Sequence record: NC_028899.1
Direction: 5' to 3' (one strand)
DNA length: 64,000 nucleotides
Position 1 is the stretch's first letter, and the number at the start of each line of letters is the position of its first letter. Under the pieces are notes generated by a model. That model worked only from the letters and a program-made list of their open reading frames with translations, made no database searches and was not told the origin of the DNA. The position numbers and the translations under genes are program-made. Positions 872 through 62,097 of the stretch are shown in pieces.

Positions 872-881
872 CGAAAACAGA

Positions 882-911
882 CACTACTGGAGGCGTGAGC
901 CTCCAGTAGTG
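882..911 (+). terminator. Intergenic hairpin, 13-bp stem, GTGA loop
   Basis: CACTACTGGAGGC-GTGA-GCCTCCAGTAGTG just downstream of the stop at 871. Confidence 0.7.
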
Positions 912-939
912 ATCTTGTGACTTTATCTATGGATTAATC

Positions 940-5692: not shown

Positions 5693-6970
5693 TTATGATA
5701 CCTGGATCTGGATTTCTTCTTCGATGAGTTTCAGGAACATGGCGTCACCCAACGTTCCCGCTTTACCCATCCACATCTGGTTGTCGACTGCCACACGGTC
5801 AGCATAACCAACCGTATTGAACAGATAATTCCGTTTGAAGGTGTCGTGGCAACGCAGCATCCAGCCACCGGCTTCGTATTGCTTCCAGTAGACTTCGTGT
5901 TTGCCTTCACCCGTAACCAGAGGCCACTTGGGTTCTTCCCACGACATGAAAGTGTGAGGAACCGTTTGCTTTTCCGGATAGGTCTTCTCGACCACGATGG
6001 TGTTCGCATCGAGCAACACCATGAACGATTGACTCATGGTGAAGTACTTGGTCAGGAAATCCTGACTCTTGAAGTTCTGAGCGATCACCCAGTTCGGGTT
6101 ATCCGTCTGATGCTGGATATTGAAATCGTCGAAGTCCAGATACGGCTCGGACTCGAAGTACTTCTCCAGGAACGGATACTTGAACGTCTTGAACGTGAAG
6201 ATGTTCGTGTTGGTGAGCAGACACTGATTGCCGCCAGGCAGCAACATGTAGCCACCCAGAATCAGAATCGGTGTCTTGGTCGTCAGATCGGTATCGGCGA
6301 ACTTGACATGGACTTTGTCGACGAGACCCGTGTCCGTATTCAGGTCGAATGCCAGCATGTCTTGCGTAATCGGCACGATGTCAAACGTACCGAACGTACC
6401 GAACGAAAGCAGACCCAGCTGGTTGCTGCCAGATTTCAGACGCGACTTGTTGCCGTCGACGATATAGAAGCCTTTCGAATCTGCAGCAGTGTTGTGGTAA
6501 AAGCCATTGACGTTGGCTAACACTTTCTGACGGAAACCCAGATAGTCGTAACCGACCTGATCTGCGGGATTGTCAGGCTTCACCACGACGTGCGGACGGA
6601 GTTCCTGAGGCAAGTCGACACCAGCACCGACATTGTAGTCGATGGAGTCTGCCCAGAAACCAGCTTCCCACAAATCGCTGAAAATAGCGTTGTTTCGCAC
6701 GATCACCGGACTACCTACGGTAGTCGGTAAAGTTTTATTGCCGATCGCGGTCAGATAGTCTGAAATCGTACCCGCATTGGTCTGGATCGCTGCTGCAACA
6801 TCGTCCAGGTTAAGTGTCAGTTCAGTGTCGGTGATTCCGTCCGTCAGGACAACATAAACCTGTCGGTATTTGGTCAGGAGGGTACTGGTAGGAGTCGCCG
6901 AAATGTCGACTTCTGCCCAGCGTTGGTTGGTGCCGGGTGCAACGGCGAGTGCTCGAACGAATGTGTACAT
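5693..6970 (-). CDS. Hypothetical protein, 425 aa, probable virion structural protein
   Basis: Long ORF with RBS (GAGG) and phage codon bias, in a structural-gene neighbourhood. Confidence 0.7.
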   Translation of the reverse strand: MYTFVRALAVAPGTNQRWAEVDISATPTSTLLTKYRQVYVVLTDGITDTELTLNLDDVAAAIQTNAGTISDYLTAIGNKTLPTTVGSPVIVRNNAIFSDLWEAGFWADSIDYNVGAGVDLPQELRPHVVVKPDNPADQVGYDYLGFRQKVLANVNGFYHNTAADSKGFYIVDGNKSRLKSGSNQLGLLSFGTFGTFDIVPITQDMLAFDLNTDTGLVDKVHVKFADTDLTTKTPILILGGYMLLPGGNQCLLTNTNIFTFKTFKYPFLEKYFESEPYLDFDDFNIQHQTDNPNWVIAQNFKSQDFLTKYFTMSQSFMVLLDANTIVVEKTYPEKQTVPHTFMSWEEPKWPLVTGEGKHEVYWKQYEAGGWMLRCHDTFKRNYLFNTVGYADRVAVDNQMWMGKAGTLGDAMFLKLIEEEIQIQVS

Positions 6971-7054
6971 AGAAACCTCACTCTTGACCGAGGGGGGTCA
7001 AGAATAATATGACCTCAAAATTAGGTTTTATCTTATTTAACCGGAGAATGCAGT

Positions 7055-9127
7055 ATGTCCGATCCCGTAACTAGCTATCCGGTAGATTACACCGGTCAGG
7101 CGGCTAGCAATCGAATCGTGGATGAACAGATCGTTATCCTCCCTCCGGGTGATCGTCTGTTCCAATTCACAATGCCGCTTTTCGCGCCGTTTTTCGAGGA
7201 AGGTCACTCCCTCAAGCTGCGCGACATCAATAACAACGTCACACCATTAACGTTGGGCGTTGACTATTATCTCAGCCACAAGTTCATGGATGCCTCCTTG
7301 GCGACCATGCACCCGATCTGGGGTTCGGTCAGCTTCCTGAAACCGATCAGCGGCGTGCTGCTGATGACGTACCAGACCCTCGGTGGAATCTGGACGATCG
7401 ATCAGGCCACGATCACCGAAATCCTGATGAACACGACTCAGAACCCGCGTATCACTACGTGGGAACAGGTCGTGGAACGTCCGGTCGACTTCCCTGTGAT
7501 CGACCACCCGTGGAACCTCGCAGACATGGTCGGCATGTCCGAGATCTACACGGTGCTGGAGAACTTCTACCAGGCATATCTCCTGTCGCTGGATCCGAAC
7601 GGCGGCGGTGGCGGTTCTTCGATCATCCTCGACCACATCAACAACAAGAACAACCCGCACAGTGTGACGGCGGCTCAAACGGGCGCCTACAGCACGCTCC
7701 AGATCGACACGATGCTGGGCGGCTATGTCACGACGTCAGGCACTGCTGCGAATTCGACTCTCTTCAATGGCAAGTCCTATGCCCAGATGCTCGTGGACGT
7801 AGCAGCCGTGAAGGTGGCGAATGCCACTCATGCTGACGTTGCCGATAACGCAACCAATGCAAACTCGGCCACGAATGCAGCAGCGCTTGGTGGTAAGTCG
7901 CTGGCTCAGCTGATGACCGATGTGGCAAACACGAAGGTCGCCAATGCTGCTCATGCCGACACTGCAGACAATGCGACGACGGCTGGTACGGCAACGGATT
8001 CGAATCAGTTGGGTGGTCAGACACTGACGCAGGTTCTGGCGGCTGCTCAACAGCAAAAAGCGGCCGATACGTTCCTGTTCAACGGCAAGTCGTATGCCGA
8101 TGCAGCAGCTGACATCCTGACGGGTAAGGCTGCCGACTCGGACAAACTCGCCGGACAAACGCTTACGCAGATCATCGCCACGCTCCAACAAGCAACTGGT
8201 GATGCGACGACCCTGAGTGGTAAAACCCTCGACCAGATCATGGCCGACGTGGTTAACACGAAGGTCAACAACGCAACGAATGCCGATACGGCAACCAATG
8301 CGCTTGCGCTCGGCGGCCAGTCTCTCTCGCAGATTCTGGCATCGGTAGCAGGCGTGGTTCCGGATCTGTCGCACAATTCGGAAGCGGTTTACGGCTACAC
8401 GTTCGACCAGCTGGTCACGGCTATCGTTCAGAGCAACACGTACGCGTCGCAACTCGACTATCTGTGCGTGGATCTGGACATTGAACACGGCACTGTCATC
8501 ACGTCGAACAATGGTGGTACGGCAGATGCCAACTATCATTACCTGTACGTGGGTTCTTTCCCGATTCCCACGACGGGCCCGACGAACAACTTCTACGATC
8601 CGACGATCGAACAGGTTGGTTCGTCCTTCGACATGTTCCTGTACTACGCGAACCAGATTCAACGGATCCGTGTGGACGTGAACGTCGACGCAAATCAGAT
8701 CATCGGCGTGAATTCCTACAGCGATGAAGGCAATCTGAACGGATCGGTTTCGATCGGTGTCCGTAACGATCCTTCGACGCTTAAGTCTTCGGATGGCACG
8801 AAGACGGGTCTGTACAAGGAAGTCTGGCTGAAGTTCAAGACCAGTAACAGCCTGCAACGAGTTGGTATTTACCAATTCGTCAAGAACAGCTTCGTGCTGG
8901 ACGAAAGCGAAACGTTGAGCCTGTACGACTCGACTGACGTTCGTTTGAACACGGTCAACTGGGGTCAGCCTAGCTTCACGGCTAACGAGAACTTGCTTCA
9001 GTCGAACATCACGGCTGAGACGACGAATCGTACCAATGCCGATACGGCGATCCGTACGGATACGCAAGCAGCGCTCGACGCGCTGGCGGCTGAAATCAAC
9101 TCCCTGACGGCAACGCCGGCTGCTTAA
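7055..9127 (+). CDS. Tail fibre-like virion protein with internal repeats
   Basis: 690 aa, A/T/N-rich; about 8 copies of (L/F)-(G/N)-G-(K/Q)-(S/T)-(L/Y)-x-Q; N-domain homologous to the next gene (D.TG....N.I..E, P..W..I...P..(F/Y).P..H......L.G). Confidence 0.65.
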   Translation: MSDPVTSYPVDYTGQAASNRIVDEQIVILPPGDRLFQFTMPLFAPFFEEGHSLKLRDINNNVTPLTLGVDYYLSHKFMDASLATMHPIWGSVSFLKPISGVLLMTYQTLGGIWTIDQATITEILMNTTQNPRITTWEQVVERPVDFPVIDHPWNLADMVGMSEIYTVLENFYQAYLLSLDPNGGGGGSSIILDHINNKNNPHSVTAAQTGAYSTLQIDTMLGGYVTTSGTAANSTLFNGKSYAQMLVDVAAVKVANATHADVADNATNANSATNAAALGGKSLAQLMTDVANTKVANAAHADTADNATTAGTATDSNQLGGQTLTQVLAAAQQQKAADTFLFNGKSYADAAADILTGKAADSDKLAGQTLTQIIATLQQATGDATTLSGKTLDQIMADVVNTKVNNATNADTATNALALGGQSLSQILASVAGVVPDLSHNSEAVYGYTFDQLVTAIVQSNTYASQLDYLCVDLDIEHGTVITSNNGGTADANYHYLYVGSFPIPTTGPTNNFYDPTIEQVGSSFDMFLYYANQIQRIRVDVNVDANQIIGVNSYSDEGNLNGSVSIGVRNDPSTLKSSDGTKTGLYKEVWLKFKTSNSLQRVGIYQFVKNSFVLDESETLSLYDSTDVRLNTVNWGQPSFTANENLLQSNITAETTNRTNADTAIRTDTQAALDALAAEINSLTATPAA

Positions 9128-9138
9128 TCTGAGGAATC

Positions 9139-10260
9139 ATGTCTGACGTTAACATCACTCCCGTCTCTCATGTTTTCGATGAAACCGGCACTCTGGCCGA
9201 GAACTACATCGAGAACGAACAACGAGATCTGGCGCAACGGAATGTCCGTGCGCTTTGCACCCGATACGGCAGTTTCTTTGTCGACTCGGTCAAGCTGCGC
9301 GATGCCAACGGCAATCCGTTGGTACCGTCGCAATACCAATTCGGTCTGTTTGCCGAAGACCTCACCGCGAAGACCGGTAAGGAAATCGCTGGCGCGGTGA
9401 TCATCACCGATGCCACGGTGATCGCTCCTGTGTTCATCGATTATCAGTGCGTGGGCGGCCCGTGGGGCGCGACCAATGAGCAGATCATCGATCTGTTCAC
9501 GCAACTGACGACCGACGATCGTCCTGTGGCGTGGCCGAACATTCTGGGTAAACCGGATGGTTACAAGCCTGCTCACCACTTCCAGGACATCGGTGACCTG
9601 TTCGGTGCGGAATACATCGTTCAGGCACTGGAGCGCTTGGGCAATGCCTACTTGATGGGCGACAATGCGTCGCACGATGAAATCCTTCGCCAGATCGACC
9701 AACTGCGTCAGGACATGAATCAGGGCTTGACTGACCTGAGCAATGCACTGAAGGCATACGCCGATGCAGGTGACGCTCGTGTCCAGGCTAACCTGGATAA
9801 CGAAGCGCAGATTCGTGCGAACGCTGATACGACTCTGCAAGGCAACATCAACAACGAAGCGACGGCGCGTCAAAATGCCGATGCGACGTTGCAGACGAAC
9901 ATCAACAACGCCATCACGCATGCGGACAATGGTGACGCTGCTTTGCAGCAGAACATCAATGCCGAAGCAACTGCTCGTCAAAACGCAGACACCGCTCTGC
10001 AGACGAACATCAACTCCGTGAACACCGCCCTCACCGCCCACGTGAATGCGACGGGTAACGTTCACAACCTGACGCCGGCTCAGCTGGGTGTGTACACGAC
10101 CGCTCAGGTCGATGCACTCATCAATAGCGTCAACGCAAACCTTGGCAATTACGTCAAGAAGAATACGGCAGAAGAACTCTCGCTGACCAACAGTGGTGGT
10201 GTTCTGTACGCATTCGTCTCTGGTGCATGGCGTGCTGTGTGGCCGCCCCAGTGGCAGTAG
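9139..10260 (+). CDS. Tail fibre-like virion protein, paralog of 7055-9127
   Basis: Shared N-domain; coiled-coil repeats EAxARQNADxxLQxNIN; ends YAFVSGAWRAVWPPQWQ. Confidence 0.65.
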   Translation: MSDVNITPVSHVFDETGTLAENYIENEQRDLAQRNVRALCTRYGSFFVDSVKLRDANGNPLVPSQYQFGLFAEDLTAKTGKEIAGAVIITDATVIAPVFIDYQCVGGPWGATNEQIIDLFTQLTTDDRPVAWPNILGKPDGYKPAHHFQDIGDLFGAEYIVQALERLGNAYLMGDNASHDEILRQIDQLRQDMNQGLTDLSNALKAYADAGDARVQANLDNEAQIRANADTTLQGNINNEATARQNADATLQTNINNAITHADNGDAALQQNINAEATARQNADTALQTNINSVNTALTAHVNATGNVHNLTPAQLGVYTTAQVDALINSVNANLGNYVKKNTAEELSLTNSGGVLYAFVSGAWRAVWPPQWQ

Positions 10261-10326: not shown

Positions 10327-11244
10327 ATGTTGCAAGTTGCCCAAGATGTAAATCTCAGTCTGTGGGATGCAGCCGGATTTTTCCGGCTGCTTGACTGCTG
10401 GCAGAATGATGAAATCGAAACCTATCGGCAGTATAACGATTCTCTCATGGGGACTCGTTATACTTTCCGAGAAATAAACCGCCGAGAAGATACGGCTGGT
10501 GTTTACATTCTTTATTTCCGTCAAAATGGTAAGTTCTACATTGGAAGCGCGCGAAGTCTTATGCGGCGCTTAGCCGATCATGAATCAAAGATACGCAACG
10601 GAAAACACCCCAATGCTAAACTTCTCAATGCCTACAAAAATAATTACGATCGTTTACCGGATGTATTCTATATCTTAACGGATAGCGATCCACTTGCCCG
10701 TCAAGTCGAACAAAGATTAATTGACCTCGTTTTCATGGACGCATGTTGCCTGAATCAGAGGACAATGGTCGAAGAGTATCGTCCTGCTACAGAAGACACT
10801 CGAAAGAAACTTCAAGAAGGCGCCAAGCGTCAGTGGGGTGATCCTGACTTCAAGAAGAAAATCTCCGAGATCTATGCAGATCCGAAACACAAAGCGAAGC
10901 GAATTGCCAATGGCAAGAAGCTCACGGAAGATCCTGAGTACATGAAGAAGCTCTCAGATGCCTCTAAGAAGCTCTGGGAAGATCCAGAATACGCCGAAAA
11001 GATCCGTCAGTCCGGTTCTGCAGTCTGGAAGGAAGAAGGCTTCAAAGAGCGCCATAAAGCCGCTATGCAGGCTAAACATTCTGATCCCGAATATCGCGCA
11101 AATGCGACTCGCGGATTAGCTGCGTCGAATGCCGCTAGACAGAAACCAGTTACGATCGGCGGAGTCCAATATCCTCATGCAAAAGCAGCTGCACAAGCGC
11201 TAGGCATGAGTGAAACTTCGGTACGGCGCAAATGCGACAAATAA
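10327..11244 (+). CDS. Free-standing GIY-YIG homing endonuclease
   Basis: GVYILYF...FYIGSA..L..RL..H motif; about five W-x-DPEY-x-x-K-x-S helical repeats; C-terminal NUMOD1/HTH-like segment; AT-richer than flanks. Confidence 0.85.
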   Translation: MLQVAQDVNLSLWDAAGFFRLLDCWQNDEIETYRQYNDSLMGTRYTFREINRREDTAGVYILYFRQNGKFYIGSARSLMRRLADHESKIRNGKHPNAKLLNAYKNNYDRLPDVFYILTDSDPLARQVEQRLIDLVFMDACCLNQRTMVEEYRPATEDTRKKLQEGAKRQWGDPDFKKKISEIYADPKHKAKRIANGKKLTEDPEYMKKLSDASKKLWEDPEYAEKIRQSGSAVWKEEGFKERHKAAMQAKHSDPEYRANATRGLAASNAARQKPVTIGGVQYPHAKAAAQALGMSETSVRRKCDK

Positions 11245-11291: not shown

Positions 11292-11828
11292 ATGAAACGA
11301 AAAGTTCACCAATCGGTCGAATGGAATCGTATCGTTCCCAACACCATCACGGCGGAGGATCTTCTTCTTCCCGAGCTTCTCACTCAAGATCATCTGTTCG
11401 AACAGGGTCTTGTTTTCACGATCGATGCTGAAGGTCGAGATCACCGCCATTCTAATGTTTACGATTTCGTGAACAAAAAGGCCGGCCGTTCGATCAAGAT
11501 CGAAGGCATCGAGCGTCTTAATCGCACGATGTGGGACTTCTGCAACCTGATCGTGAATGGCCCGATCAATAAACCGTTGCCCTTCTCGTGCCATCTGTTT
11601 ATTGCAGGCCAAAATGACGCAAGCTTTCCGGATCACACCGATCCGGACGGCGTATTCCTCTATGTCGTCGAAGGCACGAAAACGATGATCGTAGAAGGAA
11701 CGACGTATACGTTGGAAAAAGATCAAACGCTCTACATTCCGCCTGGCACGGTTCATCGTGCTGAGAACCGTGAAGCGTCCGTGATGCTTTCAATCGGTTT
11801 CGATGACTTCTTGGTGGAGAAATTCTAA
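11292..11828 (+). CDS. JmjC/cupin-type Fe(II)/2OG oxygenase (Cupin_4/ROX-like)
   Basis: GGAGGT RBS before ATG 11292; FPDHTDPDGVFLYVVEGTK and LYIPPGTVH give an HxD...H triad plus the 2OG-binding Lys. Confidence 0.75.
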   Translation: MKRKVHQSVEWNRIVPNTITAEDLLLPELLTQDHLFEQGLVFTIDAEGRDHRHSNVYDFVNKKAGRSIKIEGIERLNRTMWDFCNLIVNGPINKPLPFSCHLFIAGQNDASFPDHTDPDGVFLYVVEGTKTMIVEGTTYTLEKDQTLYIPPGTVHRAENREASVMLSIGFDDFLVEKF

Positions 11829-11829
11829 A

Positions 11830-12894
11830 ATGCATCGCACGGTATATATCAAAACAACGGAAGCGTGCAATCTGAACTGCAAGCATTGCTTTACCGGGGG
11901 CAGTCAACCGAAGCGTGAATTCCTCGACGTGGAAAGGACGATCGACTGGGTTCGACGTCTGTTTGAACACTTGAGTTTCGAGGATCACACGCATTTCGAA
12001 CTCCACGGCGGCGAGCCGTTCCTCTTGCCTGTGAAACAACTGAAGGAACTGACCAAGGGTATTCGTACCTGGGGTCCGGTCAAGCACTCGATTGGTGCGA
12101 CCACGAATCTGGTTTACAAGTTGACGGATGAACTGCTCTGGTTCATCCGCAACGATCTGGAAAGCATCGGTACGTCCTGGGATCCGGATATCCGGTTCAA
12201 GAACGACAAGCAATACCAGCTGTGGTGGGAGAACATGAAGACCATCACGAAACATTGTGATGTCACGTTGAACGTGAGCGTCTCCCGCGCTTTGGTGAAC
12301 ATGAACATCAGCGACCTGCTGATGTATCTGCGCGACACCGGTGCTTCGAAGGTTCAGTTCGAACGCATCACCCAGAACGGCAACGCGAAGAAGAACCTCA
12401 CCCTATTCCCGTCGAATGCAGAAATCAACGACTGGTATCTGCGCCTGCACAACGCGTCCGAGAAGCTGAATGCTCGCGACTGGTTCTACAATGCAGCACT
12501 GGAAGACGTGTATGCAAAATTCGAAAATGGCAATGCTTGCTCTGGCACGTTCTGTCGGAATTGCGAAGAGACCATCTTTACGCTCAACGCGGACGGCAGC
12601 ATTGGGGGTTGCGCCAATTCGGCGCCAGAAGAATCCTTTGGACACATCGACATGGACATCGGAGAACTCTTCGATACCACCGGACGAATCGATAACATTG
12701 TTAAAGAGCGCGTGCGCAACGAGCAGTGTTACGTTTGCCCTGTGGCCGCTCATTGCGGTGGTGATTGCCACCGACTGGCTTGGGAAGGCGATGTGTGTGC
12801 AGCACCCCGGCAGCTGATGAAGAAGCTCGCTGGCTTGCCGATCGACACTCCCGAAGTCCAACCGAAACGTATCATTCCCATCATGGCGGTTTAA
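11830..12894 (+). CDS. Radical SAM/SPASM protein 1
   Basis: CNLNCKHC, HGGEP, and C-terminal SPASM-like Cys array (CSGTFC..C, GC, CYVC..AAHCGGDC, C). Confidence 0.92.
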   Translation: MHRTVYIKTTEACNLNCKHCFTGGSQPKREFLDVERTIDWVRRLFEHLSFEDHTHFELHGGEPFLLPVKQLKELTKGIRTWGPVKHSIGATTNLVYKLTDELLWFIRNDLESIGTSWDPDIRFKNDKQYQLWWENMKTITKHCDVTLNVSVSRALVNMNISDLLMYLRDTGASKVQFERITQNGNAKKNLTLFPSNAEINDWYLRLHNASEKLNARDWFYNAALEDVYAKFENGNACSGTFCRNCEETIFTLNADGSIGGCANSAPEESFGHIDMDIGELFDTTGRIDNIVKERVRNEQCYVCPVAAHCGGDCHRLAWEGDVCAAPRQLMKKLAGLPIDTPEVQPKRIIPIMAV

Positions 12895-12900
12895 GGAAAT

Positions 12901-13461
12901 ATGAGTACATATCGCACAGACGTCGATGCCGTGGCCCAGGCATACGTACGGAACAACGTGAACGGGGCAATCAACCCCTATCGCTCGGATTGGGCGCCGG
13001 GCTATGTGAACATGGGTCTGGTGGGTTGGATCTCGCAAGATCCGAATCCGGCTCATCCGTCGTGGAACGGCGAATTGAGCACCAACGGCAATACCATGAT
13101 GACCAATCAGGTACGCCAGGCCATGATCGATCTGGGCGTGTATTACGCATGGATTGCCAAGGGCCACTACGGTCTGCAAACGTCGAACCAGAGCGGCGCT
13201 CAGCCTTTGCAGTATGAAGGCTATGGCTACTTCGTGTTCAACGGCGCAGCACCTGGTGCAGGCGATCATTCGAACCGGGTGTATAGCGACCTGCAAACTG
13301 CTGGTACCATGAACGGCACGATCCAATATGCCCAGCTGACGAACTTCTACCAGTTCTGCTGGAACATCATCTGGAACCGTAAAGACGACCTGCTGGTCGA
13401 TCTGACGGTATGCCATTCGTCCTGCCATTCGTCCTGCCACGGCAGCCGTGGTCGTCGTTAA
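12901..13461 (+). CDS. Putative substrate/precursor protein with a C-terminal (CHSS)n repeat
   Basis: AAGGA RBS; 186 aa ending VCHSSCHSSCHGSRGRR; immediately follows rSAM 1. Substrate role is inferred. Confidence 0.6.
   Translation: MSTYRTDVDAVAQAYVRNNVNGAINPYRSDWAPGYVNMGLVGWISQDPNPAHPSWNGELSTNGNTMMTNQVRQAMIDLGVYYAWIAKGHYGLQTSNQSGAQPLQYEGYGYFVFNGAAPGAGDHSNRVYSDLQTAGTMNGTIQYAQLTNFYQFCWNIIWNRKDDLLVDLTVCHSSCHSSCHGSRGRR
13411..13440 (+). repeat. 12-bp tandem repeat (TGCCATTCGTCC)x2 plus TGCCAC encoding CHSS-CHSS-CH
   Basis: Read directly: 13411-13422 and 13423-13434 are identical; 13435-13440 is a partial third unit. Confidence 0.95.
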
Positions 13462-13470
13462 GGAGTCGTC

Positions 13471-14541
13471 ATGATCAATCTTTTCGATCGAGTCTATCTC
13501 CGCCACGACAACGTGCTTGCGCGGGGTGAAGGTCAGCTGAAACTGATCATCAGCCCGAAGGTGAAGGAAGTCACTTACGTGATGGATCCGCTGCAACAGC
13601 AACAGGCGGGCATCATGGGCGTTTACGACTGCCTGTCCGATTGCGATCACTACATGGGTGGTCGCGATGCGCTCTGGCTGTCGCTCGCAACCAAGAAGGC
13701 CAAGGTCGTCATCATCGCAGATCGTTTCGTGGCGGCCGAGCTGCTGATCCAGTACTGGAAGGCAATCTTCAAGGAAACCACGGCCGACAGTCTGTACGCT
13801 CTGTACCAGATCGCGGTGAACAACGAGAACCTGCATACGCACCGTCCGACGGAAAAGCGTACGCACCTGGCGTCTCCCAATTCGACCGATGGTCACATCG
13901 AGAAGCTGACGGCTGAAGAATTCCAGACGCTGTACGACAAGCTGTCGCCGGCTATGCTGGACTTCTCGTCGGATGCGGCTCTGAAGTCGATTCCGTTCGA
14001 ATATCTGCTCATGTCGTATCTGGCAGATCCGTCCGAAGACCTCGTGAAGCGCGTCTTCTTCCAGAAGCTCGACGCAATCATGCGTTCGAACATCGTCGCG
14101 AAGCTGATCGGTGGGCGTGAAGAACTCATGTTCGAGACGCACAACTACTACCTGCTGGAAAACGGCGGGCAAGAGCACCTGATCACCGATCCGGTGGCGC
14201 ACCTGACGAACAGTCCGATCCTCTCGTGGGTGATGGACGAAGCGTTCGTGTATGGCAACGAAGACGAGATCCTGAAGAAGTATTCGCTCGATCAGATCAA
14301 GTTCTTCTTCGAACAGATCAAGCGTCTCGTACTCGAAGACGAATCGATCCTCGTGGCCATCGACTGCGTGAAGAACAAGCAGTACGCAAAGCTGATCGAA
14401 TACGACATCGGTGACCATCAAGGCAACTTCTTCGGCACCGGTGCGTTCGTGAACAAGATCAACGGCCTGTTGGTCTCGTACATGTATCAGCTGAAACGTC
14501 TGAACATGATGGACAAGCTCGCGCTGTACGAACTGAAGTAA
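13471..14541 (+). CDS. Hypothetical protein, 356 aa, within the rSAM cluster
   Basis: AGGAG RBS, strong codon bias, no recognised motif. Confidence 0.8.
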   Translation: MINLFDRVYLRHDNVLARGEGQLKLIISPKVKEVTYVMDPLQQQQAGIMGVYDCLSDCDHYMGGRDALWLSLATKKAKVVIIADRFVAAELLIQYWKAIFKETTADSLYALYQIAVNNENLHTHRPTEKRTHLASPNSTDGHIEKLTAEEFQTLYDKLSPAMLDFSSDAALKSIPFEYLLMSYLADPSEDLVKRVFFQKLDAIMRSNIVAKLIGGREELMFETHNYYLLENGGQEHLITDPVAHLTNSPILSWVMDEAFVYGNEDEILKKYSLDQIKFFFEQIKRLVLEDESILVAIDCVKNKQYAKLIEYDIGDHQGNFFGTGAFVNKINGLLVSYMYQLKRLNMMDKLALYELK

Positions 14542-14550
14542 ATCCATGTG

Positions 14551-14589
14551 CTGCTCGGTACCTTCGGGTACCGAGTGGTCTCTTTTTTT
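14551..14589 (+). terminator. Intrinsic terminator with cUUCGg loop and U-tract
   Basis: CTCGGTACC-TTCG-GGTACCGAG followed by TGGTCTCTTTTTTT. Confidence 0.85.
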
Positions 14590-14636
14590 CTATTGGTCAC
14601 ACTTCTGTTTTGACCTATCCCACTGAGGAAAACGAA

Positions 14637-15683
14637 ATGAGTGAAGAGAAGAAACATCCGTTGAATTTCGGCAATATGGAAATGAAGCCCGAACTCGAAC
14701 CCGCTCTCGAGATCGCGCGTGCGCCGATCGAAGATGTGCCGAACGATCCCTTGCTCGAAAATCTGGGCGCGCCGATCGATTATCAGTCGCCGAGAGAAAT
14801 CGTTCAAGCTGAAAACGTCGGCGATGGCTGGGTCGCAGAACTCCCGCCCGAGCAGCAGACCCCGGTCCAGCAGCCCGGCATCCCCGAAGACAAGCTGCGC
14901 GAAACGGTTGTACCGTTTCCGACCGACATGATCCGCCAGTACTTCAGCGACAAGGATCTGTTCTTCATCGCGAACTACAGCGAGTCGAAGCTCAAGGGCG
15001 CGCAGTTCCTGACGTACCTGTCGAACATCAACATCCCGTCGGATGTGAAGTTCAATACGCCGATCGGATACGCCGAGTATGCCGAGATCATGAAGGCGTA
15101 CATGGAATCGATCAACATCGTCAACTGCGCTGGTCTGCACGTCATGGCAGCTGAAATGCTGCTCGTCGCCAAGGGCCTGCCGTACGATCGTTCGCCGTAC
15201 GCTCTGCCGATCGACGAGAAGGTGATCCTCATGTTCATCGAGGAACACTACGAGATGGTGCAAAAGTGGCTGCACTTCATCGACTCGACGCAAGTCTACG
15301 CGCTGCGTTCGATCAAGGCGCTGAATGATCACTTCAAGCCGGAAGAACATTTCCCGGTGGTGGAAGATCGCTGCTTCGTCGGCGCGAACATCGCCCAGCT
15401 GTTCCGCATCCCGCAGTTCATCGCCCTGTACTTCGTGATCGAAAACGCGACGTACAAGTTGTCGTACTTCCGAGATCAGTTCGAAGAATACATGTTCAAG
15501 AACGAAACGCTCGCGAAGTACTTCCAGTCGCCGAACAACTTCGCTGCGCTGTATTTCATGCACTACGCGTCGGGCCTGTTCAAGCCGGAAGACATCAACC
15601 ACGGTCTGTTCAAGATCGGCGTGTTCGATCCGAACAGCGAGGCTTTCGTGAAGGAAGCATATGCCGCAACCATTCAAATCTGA
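14637..15683 (+). CDS. Hypothetical protein, 348 aa, within the rSAM cluster
   Basis: GAGGA RBS before ATG 14637; acidic Pro-rich N-terminus and aromatic-rich helical body. Confidence 0.8.
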   Translation: MSEEKKHPLNFGNMEMKPELEPALEIARAPIEDVPNDPLLENLGAPIDYQSPREIVQAENVGDGWVAELPPEQQTPVQQPGIPEDKLRETVVPFPTDMIRQYFSDKDLFFIANYSESKLKGAQFLTYLSNINIPSDVKFNTPIGYAEYAEIMKAYMESINIVNCAGLHVMAAEMLLVAKGLPYDRSPYALPIDEKVILMFIEEHYEMVQKWLHFIDSTQVYALRSIKALNDHFKPEEHFPVVEDRCFVGANIAQLFRIPQFIALYFVIENATYKLSYFRDQFEEYMFKNETLAKYFQSPNNFAALYFMHYASGLFKPEDINHGLFKIGVFDPNSEAFVKEAYAATIQI

Positions 15684-16764
15684 TTCGAACTCTTCGATGA
15701 CGATGGGTGAGGCATCCCAATACCACCTGAGTTTGAACTTGGAGTGGTTGTCGGGTTGCCAATTCAGCTGTAAAGGCTGTCACGTCAATAAGGTAACGGG
15801 CGTTCCATACACCATGACGGAGTATGTCAAGCTTAATACTTGGCTCTCCAGCATGACGTATGAAGGGAATTACCTGCCGACGATTGTCTTCCTCGGCCCG
15901 GTGGATTTCCTGGTGGCAGACAACACCTATCGTCTTCTGAAGAACGAACTTACGTGGGGCACATTCTCACAGTTCAAGCGCCTGTCTCTGCAGACGACGT
16001 TCCTGAACATGGATCGTGCTTACGAGATCGCTCAGGTTCTGAAGCAGCATTATCGGAACCTGGAACTCGAACTCAACTTCATCGTTGAGCCGGAACAGAT
16101 CAACAACGAAAAGTATCTGAATCGCATTAAGGAGAACCGCGATCGGATGCTGGATTATCTGCAGTGGGATAAGCACATCGCGTCTTTCGCCATCATGAAC
16201 GTCTACGAGTACGATCGGGTGAAGAAGAACGACGTGAAAGCAATCCTCTCGGATTACCAGGCAATGCACGCCAAGATCAAAGAGAAGTTCGATTCCACCA
16301 TCGACTTCAATTTCTCGATGACCCGTAATCCCTGGTGGGATAACGAAGACATCAAGGAAGCCGTGCAGAGCGTGAGTCGAATCTTCGACGGTGGCGTCGA
16401 TCATGAGTTCAACCAGACCATCCGATTCTCCTTCGGCAAGCTGGAAGACTCAGCGATCGAAAAGCATTACAACTGGCATCAGGGCAATCTGTATGTGTCG
16501 CCCATGATTTACGAACGCATCGCTTCTTTCAATCCGAAACTGCGTGTTCCTTTGGGACCGTTGGGTGGCGTGAGAGAAACTGAGGAGTTCGAACGCCGGT
16601 TGCTGCTGGATCAGTATCATAACTCCGAAACCAAAACCGAGTGCAATCGTTGCCGATATCAAGCCTCTTGTATCGAACGCAATGTCCTGACGTTTATGGA
16701 CATGCACGAGATCAAGGACTGCATCATCGCCCGTAAAGCTCTCGATGCCATCAACGTCATTTGA
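15661..16764 (+). CDS. Divergent radical SAM protein 2
   Basis: GCQFSCKGCH retains CxxxCxxC; GGE motif replaced by LGPVDF; reduced C-terminal CxxCx5C...C. Start could be 15697 or 15703. Confidence 0.75.
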   Translation: MPQPFKSDSNSSMTMGEASQYHLSLNLEWLSGCQFSCKGCHVNKVTGVPYTMTEYVKLNTWLSSMTYEGNYLPTIVFLGPVDFLVADNTYRLLKNELTWGTFSQFKRLSLQTTFLNMDRAYEIAQVLKQHYRNLELELNFIVEPEQINNEKYLNRIKENRDRMLDYLQWDKHIASFAIMNVYEYDRVKKNDVKAILSDYQAMHAKIKEKFDSTIDFNFSMTRNPWWDNEDIKEAVQSVSRIFDGGVDHEFNQTIRFSFGKLEDSAIEKHYNWHQGNLYVSPMIYERIASFNPKLRVPLGPLGGVRETEEFERRLLLDQYHNSETKTECNRCRYQASCIERNVLTFMDMHEIKDCIIARKALDAINVI

Positions 16765-16814: not shown

Positions 16815-17837
16815 ATGAACAACGAAATTCTGAATCAGATGCTCTCGTCCAAAGTCCAGGACAGCACGGAAATCGAACACCATCTGTTCGAGTACTGCAA
16901 CCTGAACTGTTCGTTCTGCGGTCAGGACCATGACTCGAAGGTCGGCATGGAATCGATCATCGAGAAAGCCCACAAGACCGTGGACTTCATCTTCCGTTCG
17001 AAGAAGAAGAAACACACCATCAACGTGATGGGTGGTGAGATCTTCAACGACAAGGTCGAGACGAATGTCTTTCTCGACTACTACAAGTTCTACGAAATCA
17101 TCGAAAAAGTCTGTCGCGATCTGAAGGTGGAATTCCAGATCAACTGGGTCACGAACCTGATCTTCAAAGAGAATCGTGAGATGGTGCATTGGCTCATGGA
17201 GAAAACCAAAGCCCATGCCAAGATCTCCACCTCGTATGACTTTGCGGGTCGTGGTCTGGACCTGAATCGTACTCTGACGTTCAGGTATAACCTGAGTCTC
17301 TACAAAGAGTACATCGGTGTCGTCGGCTTCGTTCTGACGAAACCGTCGATTCGTAAACTCCTGAAGGATTCGGATTCGTTCTTCCAGAATGAACTGTATC
17401 CGAACTTCCCGTTGTATTTCGATTGGTACGTGCCGGAGAAATCTTCCGAAAAGATGATGCCGTCGGAGCAAGAGATGCTCGACGCGCTGCTTTATGTCGC
17501 GGAGAAATATCCGAACATCGAACCGGTCAAATCCATGCTGGAGAACGAGCACAACAAGATGACGTGCTTCAGCTTGAACAAGACGACTATCCTGCCCGAC
17601 GGTAAGGAAGTCACATGTCGCTATCTTGAATACGACAAAGAAAAATTTATAAACGATATCGATTATTCGAGCAATGCAAACATTGTCCAATCCCACCTCG
17701 ATCGAAACGAATGCTATTCGTGTAATCACTTTGACCGCTGCCAGTTTCGGTGTTTTGTGCAAGCTGACTGGGCGGAACTCGAACGGCTGCCCACCTGTTT
17801 CATCCGAACCTTCTTCGACAAGACTGTCGGGAGGTAA
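16815..17837 (+). CDS. Radical SAM/SPASM protein 3
   Basis: GAGGT RBS; CNLNCSFC, MGGEIF, C-terminal C...C...CYSC...DRCQFRC...C. Confidence 0.9.
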   Translation: MNNEILNQMLSSKVQDSTEIEHHLFEYCNLNCSFCGQDHDSKVGMESIIEKAHKTVDFIFRSKKKKHTINVMGGEIFNDKVETNVFLDYYKFYEIIEKVCRDLKVEFQINWVTNLIFKENREMVHWLMEKTKAHAKISTSYDFAGRGLDLNRTLTFRYNLSLYKEYIGVVGFVLTKPSIRKLLKDSDSFFQNELYPNFPLYFDWYVPEKSSEKMMPSEQEMLDALLYVAEKYPNIEPVKSMLENEHNKMTCFSLNKTTILPDGKEVTCRYLEYDKEKFINDIDYSSNANIVQSHLDRNECYSCNHFDRCQFRCFVQADWAELERLPTCFIRTFFDKTVGR

Positions 17838-17839
17838 AT

Positions 17840-18493
17840 GTGCCGGAATTCATTCCGCTGAAAGGTAAAGTATTTGGTCGTTGGACAGTTATCGACGACG
17901 GAACAAGATCAAAAAACGGCCATATGTGGAAATGCCGCTGCGAATGCGGTAATACTGGTGTAGTTAACGGGAAAGACCTTCGCAGAGGCCATTCGCAAAG
18001 CTGTGGGTGCATTATTGCCGAAATAATGAAAACACAGAAGTTCGCGGCCACTCACGGAATGCATACTTTTCCAGAACACCGAATCTGGCTAAATATGAGG
18101 TATCGGTGTCGTAGTCCGAAATGTTCGGCCTGGAAAGATTACGGAGGCCGTGGAATCAAAGTCTGCGAGGAATGGGACAAGTCTTTTGAAGCTTTCATCA
18201 GAGACATGGGACGACGACCTTCTGAACAGCATTCTATCGACCGCATCGATAATGACGGGAATTATGAACCCGGTAATTGTCGATGGGCTACTCTGCAAGA
18301 GCAGGCCAAAAATCGTCGTACGACGGTAATGATCGAATACAAAGGCGAAACTCGATCGATGTCAGAATGGGCACGTCTTTACGGTATTTCCAAATCGATG
18401 CTTAGCAAGCGTCTTTCCGCGGGCCTTCCTTTTGAATTGGCGCTTCTTAAACCAAGCATCCGCCAGCCTCGTCTTAACAAAATCACTGACTAA
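17840..18493 (+). CDS. HNH homing endonuclease
   Basis: GTG start after GGAGGT; FGRWTV, CRCECG, SCGC, YGGRGIKVC, SIDRIDNDGNYEPGNCRWAT. Confidence 0.92.
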   Translation: MPEFIPLKGKVFGRWTVIDDGTRSKNGHMWKCRCECGNTGVVNGKDLRRGHSQSCGCIIAEIMKTQKFAATHGMHTFPEHRIWLNMRYRCRSPKCSAWKDYGGRGIKVCEEWDKSFEAFIRDMGRRPSEQHSIDRIDNDGNYEPGNCRWATLQEQAKNRRTTVMIEYKGETRSMSEWARLYGISKSMLSKRLSAGLPFELALLKPSIRQPRLNKITD

Positions 18494-18501
18494 ACTGCAT
18501 C

Positions 18502-19038
18502 ATGAAAATCATTCTTATCGCAGCTGAAGCAGCGAACAAGGTCATCGGCAACGACGGTAAGATGCCGTGGCATATTCCCGAAGATCTTCAGGGTTTCAAA
18601 AATACCACGATGGGTTCTGCCATCATCATGGGTCGTAAGACCTGGGACTCCTTCGGTGGTCGTCCTCTGCCTGGTCGCAAGAACATCATCGTCTCGCGTC
18701 AGCTCGATGCAGGTTGGACAGCACCGGAGGGCGCATTCCGCGTTCACAGTTTTAAATCGGCAATCAAAAGCCTGATTGCGGCCGGTTACGATCACTGTTT
18801 CGTGATTGGTGGTGAACAGCTGTATCGAGCAGCCATGCCGTGGGCTTCGATGATCATGCTCACGAAGCTCTACAAGTCCTACGAAGGCGATGCGCGCTTT
18901 CCGGACATCAGCCCGCTCGAATGGCGCATGACGGCCTCGGCGCAATTTTTCGAGGCTTCCCAACCGTACTCGGTACAGACTTACTATCCGATCAGCGAAC
19001 GCGACGTCGTTAAGTGGGTCGACCTCATCAAGGACTGA
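18502..19038 (+). CDS. folA: Dihydrofolate reductase
   Basis: VIGNDGKMPWHIPEDLQGFK, IMGRKTW, PLPGRKNIIVSR, VIGGEQLY, GDARFP. Confidence 0.93.
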   Translation: MKIILIAAEAANKVIGNDGKMPWHIPEDLQGFKNTTMGSAIIMGRKTWDSFGGRPLPGRKNIIVSRQLDAGWTAPEGAFRVHSFKSAIKSLIAAGYDHCFVIGGEQLYRAAMPWASMIMLTKLYKSYEGDARFPDISPLEWRMTASAQFFEASQPYSVQTYYPISERDVVKWVDLIKD

Positions 19039-19039
19039 T

Positions 19040-19618
19040 ATGGACATCATCCTGACTGCTTTGATTTACAACGACAACACCATCGGCGCGAAGGGTGAGC
19101 GTCCCGACTTTGTCGGACAGCATGCTTCGTACATTAGCGATCTCAGACATCGCTTTGTGCTGATCGGACGTAAAACGTTCGAGGCCATGGGCAAGCCGAA
19201 ACTCGGTACGCGTACGTTTGTCTTTTCGCGTAACCACGAATACCAGTCCGAAGGCGTAACGACGATCCTCGATCTGGCGGCTTTCATCAAGATCGCAGCT
19301 GAAGCTGGTGAATCGGAAGTCGTCGTATTCGGTGGCGCACAGACGTTCCATGCGACGATGCCTTGGGCGGACAAACTGTGTATTACCTGGGTTCATCGGA
19401 ATCGCGAAGGCGAGATGAAGTTCCCTCAGTTTCCGCCGCATTTCCACTGCCCTGCGTGGGATACCCAGGAATATGACGTCGATGGTGTCTTGCTCGAATC
19501 CATGACGTATTACCGGTGGAACGACGTACCGTTCCCGAGCGAAACTCTGGAAGACCAAGCAATGCTGGTCGCCAAGGACTATGCTCGTCGCCTTACCGGC
19601 AAACGACCGCTTATCTGA
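19040..19618 (+). CDS. Divergent DHFR-fold protein (possible pseudo-enzyme)
   Basis: TIG, LIGRKTF, VFSR, VFGGAQTF, GEMKFP are retained; the PW..P.D substrate loop is replaced by PDFVGQH. Confidence 0.75.
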   Translation: MDIILTALIYNDNTIGAKGERPDFVGQHASYISDLRHRFVLIGRKTFEAMGKPKLGTRTFVFSRNHEYQSEGVTTILDLAAFIKIAAEAGESEVVVFGGAQTFHATMPWADKLCITWVHRNREGEMKFPQFPPHFHCPAWDTQEYDVDGVLLESMTYYRWNDVPFPSETLEDQAMLVAKDYARRLTGKRPLI

Positions 19619-19626
19619 AATTCATT

Positions 19627-20703
19627 ATGAGCCATCCTTCACTGATCATCAAACCGACTGAAGCGTGCAATTTTAAATGCACCTTCTGTTCGTCGACGGA
19701 TATCCAAGGCGATTCTCCTAACCTCGACGTCGAGTACATCAAGTTGTACCTGGAGCGTTTCCCGAAGACTCCGACGATCATCGTGAATGGTGGGGATCCG
19801 CTCATGATGAAACCCGAGTACTATTGGGAGATCATCAAGATCATTGAGAGTATGGGCTTGAAGACCACGCTCTCATTTACAAGCAATCTGTGGGCTTTCT
19901 ACAAGAAGCCTGAGATGTGGGTGGACTTGTTTCGCCATCCGCTTGTAGGGGTCTCTACGAGCTTCCAATACGGTAATTCACGGCTTAAGGGCGACCTCAC
20001 TCCGTTTACCGAGGAAGAGTTCTGGAAAGTGTCCGATCTGATGCTGGAAAAGGTCGGTTATCGCCCACCTTTCATTGCAGTCATTACAAAAGAAAATGAG
20101 GATACCAGTATCCAGACTGTCGAGCTTGCTAAACGCATGGGTGTTGTCTGTAAGCTCAACTATGCAATGGCCTCCGGACCCAAGACAACGTTCAAAGGCA
20201 TTACGATCGGCAACGCCGATTCCACCTACGTCCTTGCGGATATCTACGAAAAGTATATCAAGATCGCCGAAGCGGGACTCGCGCCGTGGGAACATAACAC
20301 GCAAGTCATGATGAAACGACTGGCAGGTCAGCAAAATCAGATCTGTCCTCAGGCTCGTCATTGTGATGAGGGGATTCGCTCTTTGCAGCCTGGTGGAAAG
20401 TACTATAGCTGCGGAGCATTCGGAGACGACGGATTATATCCTATCGACTTCGCTAATGAGATGGCAGGCGGCTTTGAAACTCCACTTCGCCATCAACCGG
20501 AATTGCAGTCACTCAAGTTCTCATGCTTCGAGTGCCCCATGTTTGAAATCTGCAACGGGTGCCGTAAGACCACGCACGATCTTAAACGTCTTGACCTGGT
20601 GGAAGTCCACTGCTCCAAGATGAAGACGCTGGCTCCGAAAATCATCGATCTGAATGGGCTTACCGGAAAAGTATATCCGACGCCCTATGTCAAGGAGACA
20701 TAA
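19627..20703 (+). CDS. Radical SAM/SPASM protein 4
   Basis: CNFKCTFC, NGGDP, SPASM-like ICP...HC...SCG...CFECPMFEICNGC...C. Confidence 0.92.
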   Translation: MSHPSLIIKPTEACNFKCTFCSSTDIQGDSPNLDVEYIKLYLERFPKTPTIIVNGGDPLMMKPEYYWEIIKIIESMGLKTTLSFTSNLWAFYKKPEMWVDLFRHPLVGVSTSFQYGNSRLKGDLTPFTEEEFWKVSDLMLEKVGYRPPFIAVITKENEDTSIQTVELAKRMGVVCKLNYAMASGPKTTFKGITIGNADSTYVLADIYEKYIKIAEAGLAPWEHNTQVMMKRLAGQQNQICPQARHCDEGIRSLQPGGKYYSCGAFGDDGLYPIDFANEMAGGFETPLRHQPELQSLKFSCFECPMFEICNGCRKTTHDLKRLDLVEVHCSKMKTLAPKIIDLNGLTGKVYPTPYVKET

Positions 20704-21248: not shown

Positions 21249-21255
21249 GAAAGTT

Positions 21256-24021: not shown

Positions 24022-24023
24022 CC

Positions 24024-61983: not shown

Positions 61984-62097
61984 GTTTATTACCTCTTATT
62001 CCTAGGAAAAAGGTTTTCTGGAAAAACGAAAACTGCGATTCTGTACAAAACCGGTTTTGGCAGTGATTACCACCAAATTATTGAGACTTTGTTTGCT

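Follow-up and report, generated by a model that had tools for sequence, protein, structure and literature searches.

A near-invariant C-terminal Cys-His tail linked to radical SAM genes in a putative jumbo-phage virion protein

Organization of the ORF071 locus

The locus lies in the genome of Ralstonia jumbo phage RSF1 (NC_028899.1), of which a stretch of 64,000 nucleotides, the window, was analysed. Directly upstream of the cassette described here, ORF066 (7055–9127, + strand) and ORF067 (9139–10260, +) encode paralogous virion-structural, tail-fibre-like proteins, supported by PHROG hits to virion structural, tail and tail-fibre families and by the RefSeq annotation of a "virion structural protein". 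Large fibre-like genes hold the same position in other loci, the gene for the tailed protein always lying downstream of them. The conserved module opens with ORF069 (11292–11828, +), a predicted cupin/JmjC-like Fe(II) oxygenase (Pfam Cupin_2, 3e-13; JmjC_2, 3e-7) whose H-x-D...H triad is invariant in 7 homologues and whose family is present in 6 of the 7 deep contexts compared. ORF070 (11830–12894, +) follows and encodes a radical SAM (rSAM)/SPASM enzyme, separated by a 6-nt gap from ORF071 (12901–13461, +; YP_009207875.1), the subject of this study.

ORF071 translates to 186 residues, of which residues 1–169 form the body and residues 170–186 the C-terminal tail (13408–13458, +), ending V-CHSS-CHSS-CHGS-RGRR-stop. 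Cys residues occur at positions 153, 171, 175 and 179, leaving a single Cys outside the tail, and the body consists of 13.6% F/W/Y and 20.1% N+G. Tandem Repeats Finder reports an exact 12-bp repeat, TGCCATTCGTCC, in 2.4 copies at 13411–13439 (+). The original prediction, which described an aromatic- and Asn/Gly-rich body with one other Cys and a period-4 Cys-His tail encoded by an exact 12-bp tandem repeat, is therefore correct as an observation. However, the exact DNA repeat is specific to RSF1: the eight other Chiangmaivirus orthologues encode the same peptide, with one S to T change, using different codons and without an exact repeat. Selection therefore acts on the peptide, and a DNA-level repeat element is rejected.

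Downstream, ORF072 (13471–14541, +), whose Shine-Dalgarno sequence sits directly after the ORF071 stop, belongs to a family present in 6 of 7 contexts, and searches returned no Pfam or PDB relative. A terminator-like hairpin with a 13-bp stem and a T-run (14550–14589, +) closes the cupin–rSAM–ORF071–ORF072 unit. ORF073 (14610–15683, +) represents the most widely shared partner family, present in 7 of 7 contexts and within 4 kb downstream in 68 of 81 loci; its core spans residues 96–357, preceded by an acidic, Pro-rich N-terminal extension of variable length, and its homologues range from 254 to 604 aa. The AF2 model of ORF073 has a pLDDT of 91.8, yet a Foldseek search of its core against the PDB gave no fold match. 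Beyond it lie ORF074 (15661–16764, +), an rSAM enzyme with CX3CX2C at residue 33 and one C-terminal auxiliary motif of 4 conserved Cys; the rSAM/SPASM paralogues ORF075 (16815–17837, +) and ORF079 (19615–20703, +); the 2OG-Fe(II) oxygenase ORF080 (20703–21248, +; Pfam 2OG-FeII_Oxy_5); the rSAM paralogue ORF081 (21175–22197, +; RefSeq start at 21337); and a second 2OG-Fe(II) oxygenase, ORF082 (22176–22754, +). ORF083, ORF084 and ORF085 (22751–24443, +) are further cassette families shared with other loci, ORF083 and ORF084 clustering with the 2OG-FeII_Oxy_3 protein of one of the compared loci (L010) and ORF085 having homologues in two others (L016 and L017). The gene for ORF071 lies in the structural module, between the baseplate assembly protein and the fibre-like ORF066/067 on one side and the baseplate wedge ORF089 on the other, and the same position is seen in other phages.

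Conservation and portability of the C-terminal tail

A profile search recovers 836 clusters (50% identity) at E<=1e-3. The bodies diverge to a mean identity of about 24%, whereas nearly all members end in C-H-x-S-C-H-x-[SN]-C-H-x-S-R-x-R-R-stop, preceded in the family signature by [VI], with C, H and R invariant at 11 columns. All synonymous codons and both Ser codon classes are in use. Within Chiangmaivirus, 7 tail codons vary only synonymously and 1 of 17 changes the amino acid, against 44 of 169 in the body. Repeat-number variation among relatives, which had been proposed as a check, is absent: almost all members carry three units and two carry four. The basic end varies between R-G-R-R and R-S-R-R. 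Four genome hits (L020, L022, L025 and L050) proved to be chance low-complexity Cys-His runs and were discarded.

A chance low-complexity end or an annotation artefact is refuted by these data. The only support for an artefact is a 714-aa ORF on the opposite strand (12403–14547), which has no family hit, whereas the + strand gene has hundreds of homologues and is under purifying selection. The pattern CHxxCHxxCH occurs once in the six-frame translation of the window, against about 0.0001 expected from residue frequencies, and it is far beyond chance because the same tail ends hundreds of distant homologues.

The tail also ends a sequence-unrelated family of 125–140 aa proteins, delineated by clustering without the tail. 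The hhalign probability of this family against the ORF071 body is 3.9%, and 118 of 120 members carry the motif. tblastn searches of isolated phages with the short tail protein and with a distant member gave no match, and another of the compared loci, L068, matched no isolate. Chromosomal copies of the tail are concentrated in Bdellovibrionota. A Sec-type signal peptide is lacking in 123 of 124 members examined, which argues against a secreted protein and fits cytoplasmic maturation.

Predicted structure of ORF071

The AlphaFold model of ORF071 comprises a confidently folded body (pLDDT 91.8) and a low-confidence, disordered tail. Foldseek of this model against the PDB found no hit with E<=0.001, and against BFVD it found only uncharacterised phage proteins. 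Sequence profile searches of the PDB with the ORF071, ORF072 and ORF073 alignments gave nothing significant, Pfam and NCBIfam returned no family for ORF071, and PHROGs returned only its own unannotated family, phrog_35144.

The greater conservation of the tail than of any body, together with its presence on unrelated bodies, is the pattern expected of leader or recognition sequences, raising the possibility that the tail is only a docking tag, a C-terminal "follower" recruiting enzymes to sites in the variable body or in a partner protein. This reading is considered unlikely, since the bodies are compact, predicted folded domains with no conserved Cys (76 of 120 short members have no other Cys), rSAM maturases normally need an unstructured substrate, and the only disordered segment is the tail itself.

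Linkage to radical SAM enzymes

Of 159 loci carrying the tail, 150 (about 94%) also hold at least one rSAM-family gene. Among RSF1-type genes, 68 of 81 have an rSAM gene ending less than 100 nt upstream, while the ORF074 family sits directly next to the short tail proteins. Every isolated phage with an ORF070 orthologue has a tail protein directly downstream, and the cassette is conserved in 7 of 7 deep contexts. In the RSF1 type, the order is cupin, rSAM/SPASM, tail protein, two families without assigned function, further rSAMs and 2OG oxygenases, downstream of tail-fibre-like genes.

ORF070 belongs to the rSAM/SPASM superfamily. PF04055 scores 30.5 bits against a cut-off of 29.5, and the CX3CX2C motif, CNLNCKHC at residue 13, is conserved in 6 of 6 orthologues. 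The C-terminal SPASM domain is supported by TIGR04085 (28.8 bits against a cut-off of 27) and by eight conserved Cys, including CX2CX5CX3C. The position of the cluster motif leaves no room for an N-terminal RRE domain. Judged from these motifs and from the invariant cupin triad, the enzymes look active.

The large enzyme complement, with at least 5 rSAMs and 3–5 oxygenases, and the occurrence of the cassette in bacterial chromosomes could also suit a precursor or scaffold whose processed tail is cut off as a small peptide, cofactor or metallophore, as with PQQ or mycofactocin precursors, the body serving only as a carrier; invariant product-encoding residues are typical of cofactor precursors. 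This alternative is improbable on present evidence, as no protease or exporter is conserved in the cassette, the bodies of 125–300 aa are confidently folded in prediction and, for one distant homologue, present in virions, and the genes lie in the baseplate/fibre module.

Comparison with known maturation systems

The rSAMs of the cassette score far below the cut-off of every curated maturase family, so the reaction type cannot be read from homology. The closest solved relative of ORF070, and the only solved structure that it matches, is the anaerobic sulfatase-maturating enzyme (anSME; E=1e-3), an rSAM/SPASM enzyme of about 360 aa without an RRE domain that oxidises one Cys or Ser in a short motif of a full-size protein. 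TIGR03942 aligns over the full length of ORF070 but reaches only 42 bits against a cut-off of 349.45. In the last tail unit, Cys is followed four residues on by Arg, as in the sulfatase signature, which lies near the N-terminus of sulfatase-fold substrates. However, ORF071 has no sulfatase domain or other Pfam hit, its motif is repeated three times at the extreme C-terminus, and several different rSAMs and oxygenases accompany it.

The best NCBIfam hit of ORF070 is PapB (51.3 bits against a cut-off of 340), with lower scores for all other families, including CteB/SCIFF and AlbA. Ranthipeptide and sactipeptide maturases (PapB, SCIFF and CteB-type) and QhpD/QhpC are SPASM systems that link Cys sulfur to carbons of nearby residues in Cys-repeat substrates, QhpD modifying an enzyme subunit rather than a free peptide. 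In contrast to the short, leader-bearing precursors bound by an RRE domain in ranthipeptide and sactipeptide systems, the ORF071 body is a predicted folded domain of 169 aa, a homologue's body is found in virions, and His, Ser and Arg are invariant as well as Cys.

The tail contains three His-x-Ser triplets, and ORF070, ORF079 and ORF081 give weak N-terminal hits to the cyclophane ("triceptide") and His-Xaa-Ser (Hxs) maturases YhhB, FxsB, GrrM, XyeB, HxsB and HxsC, all far below cut-off. The best HxsB hit is 25.8 bits against 370 (ORF081) and the best HxsC hit 31.7 bits against 267.9 (ORF079). ORF071 has no NCBIfam hit at E<=0.01, and thus no HxsA hit, and no HxsD hit was found among the 10 cassette proteins scanned. 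Moreover, the period is 4 rather than 3, with a Cys in each unit and the copy number almost fixed at three. Membership of the Hxs system is rejected.

The CXXX-repeat peptide/rSAM system (TIGR04115) likewise places Cys at every fourth residue next to an rSAM maturase, but scores 25.3 bits against a cut-off of 350, over the N-terminal cluster-binding region only, and ORF071 carries three units on a protein rather than a long repeat peptide. DynA is the second-best hit of ORF070 (50 bits against a cut-off of 450). The darobactin and dynobactin maturases DarE and DynA are single SPASM enzymes that make several cross-links, including one through a His side chain, and their products act at the Gram-negative outer membrane, where phage fibres and predatory bacteria also act. 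Those products are released heptapeptides to decapeptides, whereas nothing here shows release or binding to an outer-membrane protein. Finally, phage spikes and fibres of the P2/phi92 and T4 types carry His-coordinated iron at their tips, being small particle proteins with closely spaced C-terminal metal ligands; no structural or sequence match to these was returned, and such tips need no dedicated enzymes and use His only.

Virion association of a distant homologue

Agrobacterium phage Atu_ph07 gp170, a distant homologue of 31.89 kDa with the same tail, is a published virion protein (PMC6102473, Table S5), identified by 8 unique peptides and 35% coverage and peaking in gel band 1, at the top of the gel. 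The last tryptic peptide of gp170 spans 30 residues and ends at the first Arg of the tail. The neighbouring gp165–169, gp171 and gp172 are not listed. These data concern gp170 and not RSF1 itself. Additionally, one member of the family is fused to a Gly-rich tail-fibre-type domain.

The gel behaviour of gp170 bears on the main rival explanation, in which the tail is an unmodified metal-binding or disulfide clasp. Three Cys and three His, possibly from several chains of an oligomer, would bind Zn, Fe or an Fe-S cluster, or form intermolecular disulfides, stapling the protein to partners in the particle, while the rSAM and oxygenase genes act on another substrate, such as the fibre proteins or a small molecule. 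The invariant residues are classical metal ligands with fixed spacing, the gel buffer lists no reductant, and the only three Cys of gp170 are in the tail, so its high apparent mass may be simple disulfide linkage, which would imply free thiols. This explanation is nevertheless judged unlikely, although it ranks first among the alternatives: it does not explain why the tail, on two unrelated bodies, is encoded directly beside rSAM genes in about 94% of loci, why the enzyme orthologue never occurs without it in isolated phages, or why Ser and the R-x-R-R end are invariant.

Proposed maturation of the tail and its implications

The reading favoured here, at a probability of roughly 0.55, is that ORF071 is a structural protein of the phage particle, probably associated with the baseplate or tail fibres, whose short, flexible and nearly invariant tail is the substrate handle of a dedicated maturation cassette encoded around it. 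The analysis itself establishes that the tail is the conserved element of a very large family, that it is portable between unrelated bodies, that it is almost always encoded beside rSAM genes of the peptide/protein-modifying SPASM type and beside Fe(II) oxygenases, and that a homologue is present in purified virions in which the neighbouring enzymes were not detected. Everything beyond this, including enzyme activity and any cross-link, is inferred without chemical evidence for a modification. In this view, ORF070 and its old paralogues ORF074, ORF075, ORF079 and ORF081 would act in the cytoplasm of the infected cell on the three Cys and/or the His-x-Ser triplets, possibly yielding thioether or C-C/C-N cross-links or oxidation of Cys, while ORF069 and the 2OG oxygenases would hydroxylate His, Arg or Ser, producing a rigid, chemically unusual, basic C-terminal tip. 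Against this reading, RiPP cores are usually variable, an invariant Cys/His motif is also what a plain metal site would look like, and ORF072 and ORF073 gave no functional clue. Because a similar cassette sits in chromosomes of predatory Bdellovibrionota, the tip is most likely used at the prey or host cell envelope, for attachment, anchoring or cross-linking, although this last step is speculation.

The interpretation offered in the original prediction is thus partly supported. Comparative evidence supports the tail as the conserved functional element, its genomic tie to rSAM/SPASM enzymes across phages and bacteria, and an N-domain that is a predicted folded protein rather than a leader. The suggested relation to His-Xaa-Ser precursors is not supported, and the two alternatives that it offered, a modified core or a metal-binding site, are not separated by these data.

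A bolder and improbable possibility is that the matured tail acts as a protein-borne "warhead" displayed on phage fibres or baseplates and on equivalent structures of predatory Bdellovibrionota. A rigid, rSAM-cross-linked and hydroxylated tip, possibly metal-loaded and basic, would bind or breach the Gram-negative envelope, for example by docking onto an outer-membrane protein in the way released rSAM-made macrocycles do, representing a post-translational chemistry of cell attack shared by viruses and bacterial predators.

rSAM/SPASM maturases are known for small secreted peptides (RiPPs), cofactors and a few enzymes, whereas enzymatic maturation of a phage particle protein by a phage-encoded battery of at least five rSAMs plus oxygenases was not found described in the literature searched. 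The motif string appears in no paper, a search combining the CXXX repeat with radical SAM found nothing, and the jumbo-phage comparative review does not mention radical SAM. Genome papers on jumbo phages, including those on FLC6, SURPRISE13 and pPa_SNUABM_DT01, only list many such enzymes without explanation, and the present finding gives these genes a concrete candidate substrate. The family, with at least 836 clusters plus a second family, is entirely annotated as "hypothetical", and neither the body nor the partners have a fold relative in the PDB, yet the 16-residue signature is specific enough to find the system anywhere. The enrichment in predatory bacteria hints at a wider function in attacking Gram-negative cells.

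The ORF071 tail and its conservation in Chiangmaivirus

ORF071, the open reading frame at window 12901–13461 (+), translates to a 186-residue protein that terminates in DLTV-CHSS-CHSS-CHGS-RGRR-stop. The protein carries a single cysteine outside this tail, C153, and its body is rich in Asn, Gly and aromatic residues. Tandem Repeats Finder confirms an exact 12-bp repeat at 13411–13439, and the tail pattern occurs once in the six-frame translation of the window against an expectation of about 1e-4. The sequence features described in the original prediction are present. A 714-residue open frame on the opposite strand (12403–14547, −) lies antisense to ORF070–ORF072, but it has no family hit and is most likely a shadow ORF.

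The window is 100% identical to positions 62001–126000 of Ralstonia phage RSF1 (NC_028899.1), a phiKZ-related jumbo phage of the genus Chiangmaivirus, in which ORF071 is annotated as a hypothetical protein. Eight further Chiangmaivirus genomes from Ralstonia and Burkholderia hosts carry a 186-residue orthologue at the same place. The body is 81–85% identical among these proteins, while the tail is identical except for one Ser to Thr change. At the DNA level, seven tail codons differ only synonymously and one changes the amino acid. The exact 12-bp repeat exists only in RSF1, where units 1 and 2 appear to have been homogenised. The repeat is therefore a peptide feature under purifying selection rather than a DNA element.

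A large protein family defined by its C-terminus

A word-indexed search returned 166 homologues of ORF071, and a profile search of 1.84 billion representatives returned 836 clusters at E<=1e-3, of which 591 reach E<=1e-10. The bodies fall to about 20% identity with ORF071, and in a 75-member alignment the only invariant columns are the C, H, C, H, C, H, S, R, G, R and R of the tail. Of 252 members, 212 end exactly in CHxxCHxxCHxxRGRR, while most of the remainder carry R-S-R-R or R-I-R-R, a few contain a one-residue insertion, and four are degenerate or truncated. The consensus is [VI]-C-H-x-S-C-H-x-[SN]-C-H-x-S-R-x-R-R-COOH, in which the x positions are small residues. Across 187 environmental genes, every invariant residue is encoded by all of its synonymous codons, including both Ser codon classes. 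Variation in repeat number among relatives was also examined and is almost absent: the copy number is three, and the only variants seen are two Bacteriovoracia members with four Cys-His units, at 864–1433 (+) of locus L048 and 156–764 (+) of locus L056 (L numbers denote the individual tail-bearing loci retrieved).

The tail is portable between bodies. A DNA pattern for the tail found 47 stretches in species-representative genomes and at least 120 in IMG/VR; four of the genome hits were low-complexity chance matches. Among the real hits, 121 have the ORF071-type body, and another 51 are short proteins of 124–140 residues whose body shows no profile similarity to that of ORF071 (hhalign probability 3.9%). 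This second family comprises at least 146 clusters, 118 of the 120 listed members end in the motif, and it is abundant in marine metagenomes. Its members usually occur as tandem pairs positioned directly after a very large fibre-like gene and directly before an rSAM gene of the ORF074 type, as in L066, L091, L100, L109, L119, L133 and others; in L109 the pair lies at 6766–7583 (−) and the fibre-like gene encodes 1979 residues. A few other bodies also occur, and one member fuses a Gly-rich, tail-fibre-type domain in front of the ORF071 body and tail. In some loci, including L018 (9240–10756, +), L116, L135 and L139, two tandem long tail-bearing paralogues of about 250 residues each lie behind one rSAM.

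Organization of the surrounding cassette

Clustering of the neighbouring genes in seven deep contexts identifies a set of shared families: a cupin (ORF069), an rSAM/SPASM family with several paralogues per locus (ORF070, ORF075, ORF079 and ORF081), a second rSAM family (ORF074), two families of unknown function (ORF072 and ORF073), 2OG-Fe(II) oxygenases (ORF080 and ORF082; ORF083 and ORF084), and ORF085. The RSF1-type order is cupin, rSAM/SPASM and tail protein, then ORF072 and/or ORF073, then further rSAMs and oxygenases, while in the short type two tail proteins are followed at once by an ORF074-type rSAM. Over all retrieved loci, 150 of 159 with a tail ORF contain an rSAM-family gene, and the exceptions mostly have short flanks. 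Of 81 RSF1-type genes, 68 have an rSAM ending within 100 nt upstream, and 68 have an ORF073 homologue within 4 kb downstream. In the converse direction, a tblastn search with ORF070 finds orthologues in only four groups of isolated phages, namely Chiangmaivirus, Atu_ph07, Sinorhizobium phage Phosso and Pseudomonas phage pPa_SNUABM_DT01, and each has a tail protein directly downstream. Conservation of the enzymes without the tail, which had been set beforehand as grounds for rejecting the link, is therefore not what this search shows.

In RSF1 the intergenic gaps are 6 nt between ORF070 and ORF071 and 9 nt between ORF071 and ORF072, each with a Shine-Dalgarno sequence. A strong terminator-like hairpin with a 13-bp stem and a T-run follows ORF072 at 14550–14589 (+), suggesting that the cupin, rSAM, ORF071 and ORF072 form one transcription unit. 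The cassette always lies downstream of large fibre-like genes and inside the baseplate/fibre module. In the window, the upstream genes ORF066 and ORF067 (7055–10260, +) share an N-terminal domain of about 170 residues (phrog_2163 / phrog_28376) followed by different C-terminal parts, which is the pattern of alternative fibres or receptor-binding proteins sharing one attachment domain.

A GIY-YIG homing-endonuclease gene (ORF068; 10327–11244, +) is inserted between ORF067 and the cupin in RSF1, FLC6 and FLC4-11C, and is absent at that spot in RSL2, RsoM3USA, SURPRISE13, FLC4-4C, FLC8 and FLC4-5C. A small HNH endonuclease gene, annotated at 18329–18493, lies in a 660-nt gap (17838–18500, +) between the rSAM ORF075 and the DHFR gene in RSF1, whereas in the relatives those two genes abut or overlap. 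Two tandem dihydrofolate reductase genes, one canonical and one diverged (18502–19618, +), sit in the middle of the rSAM cassette in Chiangmaivirus and are absent from the cassette in the other contexts.

Sequence features of the cassette enzymes

ORF070 contains CX3CX2C at residue 13, leaving no room for an N-terminal RRE domain, together with eight conserved C-terminal cysteines including CX2CX5CX3C, a full SPASM domain. The ORF074-type enzymes contain CX3CX2C plus four C-terminal cysteines. The paralogues within RSF1 are only 23–27% identical, so they are old and presumably perform different functions. NCBIfam returns only weak hits, to PapB (51 bits), DynA (50), YhhB (46) and anSME (42), all far below cut-offs of 340–450, and the only solved relative is anSME, at E=1e-3; the reaction type cannot be read from homology. 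The cupin has an invariant H-x-D...H triad and hits JmjC_2, the family of ribosomal Arg/His hydroxylases.

Predicted structures of ORF071 and its partners

AlphaFold2 with 75 sequences predicts a confident alpha/beta body for ORF071 (mean pLDDT 91.8, pTM 0.86), while the last 17 residues have low confidence. A Foldseek search with this model finds no PDB relative, and in BFVD it finds only uncharacterised phage proteins, including one from Atu_ph07. The core of ORF073 is also confidently predicted (pLDDT 91.8) and has no PDB relative. This core of 260 residues is conserved, whereas the N-terminal extension of 95 residues (14610–14894, +) is acidic, Pro-rich and highly variable in length, with orthologues ranging from 254 to 604 residues (348–598 among Chiangmaivirus-like sequences). 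Neither ORF072 nor ORF073 has a Pfam or PDB sequence relative.

A homologue in virions of Atu_ph07

Atu_ph07 gp170 is a protein of 296 residues that ends in CHSSCHASCHNSRSRR, and its computed mass of 31.89 kDa equals the published value. It is listed among the virion proteins identified by ESI-MS/MS, with 8 unique peptides and 35% coverage (PMC6102473, Table S5). The protein was found in gel bands 1–9 and was most abundant in band 1, whereas proteins of 87–137 kDa peak in bands 1–2 and proteins of about 30 kDa peak in band 8. The neighbouring cupin, rSAMs and partner genes (gp165–169, gp171 and gp172) are not listed. A family member is therefore a particle protein that migrates far above its monomer mass. 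However, the loading buffer as described contains no reductant and the only three cysteines of gp170 are in the tail, so that intermolecular disulfides through the tail would explain the shift. The main alternative, an unmodified metal or disulfide clasp, fits both the ligand-like residues and the non-reducing gel, but it leaves the enzyme linkage unexplained. Release of the tail as a cofactor or peptide is less likely, because the body is in virions and no protease or exporter is conserved.

Distribution in jumbo phages and predatory bacteria

The family occurs in four groups of isolated jumbo phages and in many uncultured viral contigs of 5–490 kb, including marine ones. Among species-representative genomes, chromosomal copies of the tail protein and its rSAM cassette, which may lie in prophages or in particle-like gene sets, are concentrated in predatory Bdellovibrionota, which account for 27 of about 43 validated loci (Bdellovibrio, Bacteriovoracaceae, Halobacteriovoraceae and Pseudobdellovibrionaceae). 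Some of these, within L023–L064, lie on long contigs, such as L041 (2.8 Mb), L062 (2.4 Mb) and L039 (1.3 Mb). In one Halobacteriovoraceae contig (L010, 10001–10591), the cassette lies next to a Peptidase_S74 (fibre chaperone) protein and within about 7 kb of a ribosomal protein S20 gene and acyl-CoA metabolism genes. Of 124 members, 123 lack a Sec-type signal peptide.

Comparison with related systems and interpretation

The system resembles rSAM/SPASM protein or peptide maturation, but it fails the criteria tested for the Hxs, anSME, ranthipeptide/sactipeptide, CXXX-repeat and triceptide families. It differs from them in placing an invariant C-terminal tag on folded, probable particle proteins, in using two unrelated carrier bodies, in combining a battery of old rSAM paralogues with oxygenases, in including two partner families without known folds, and in its distribution in jumbo phages and predatory bacteria.

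The comparative data establish that the tail is a conserved, portable and disordered tag that is tightly linked to rSAM/SPASM enzymes and Fe(II) oxygenases, that the genes sit in the structural module, and that one homologue is in virions. The original interpretation, in which the tail is a modified core or a metal-binding site matured by the cluster and the large N-domain resembles a structural protein, is supported only in part. Three candidate chemistries are indistinguishable on present evidence: thioether links from the three cysteines; three-residue cross-links across His-x-Ser; and oxidation of Cys as in sulfatase maturation, with hydroxylation of His, Arg or Ser by the oxygenases. What we infer, rather than observe, is that the tail is the substrate of the cassette, and that the product would be a chemically altered tip on a particle protein.
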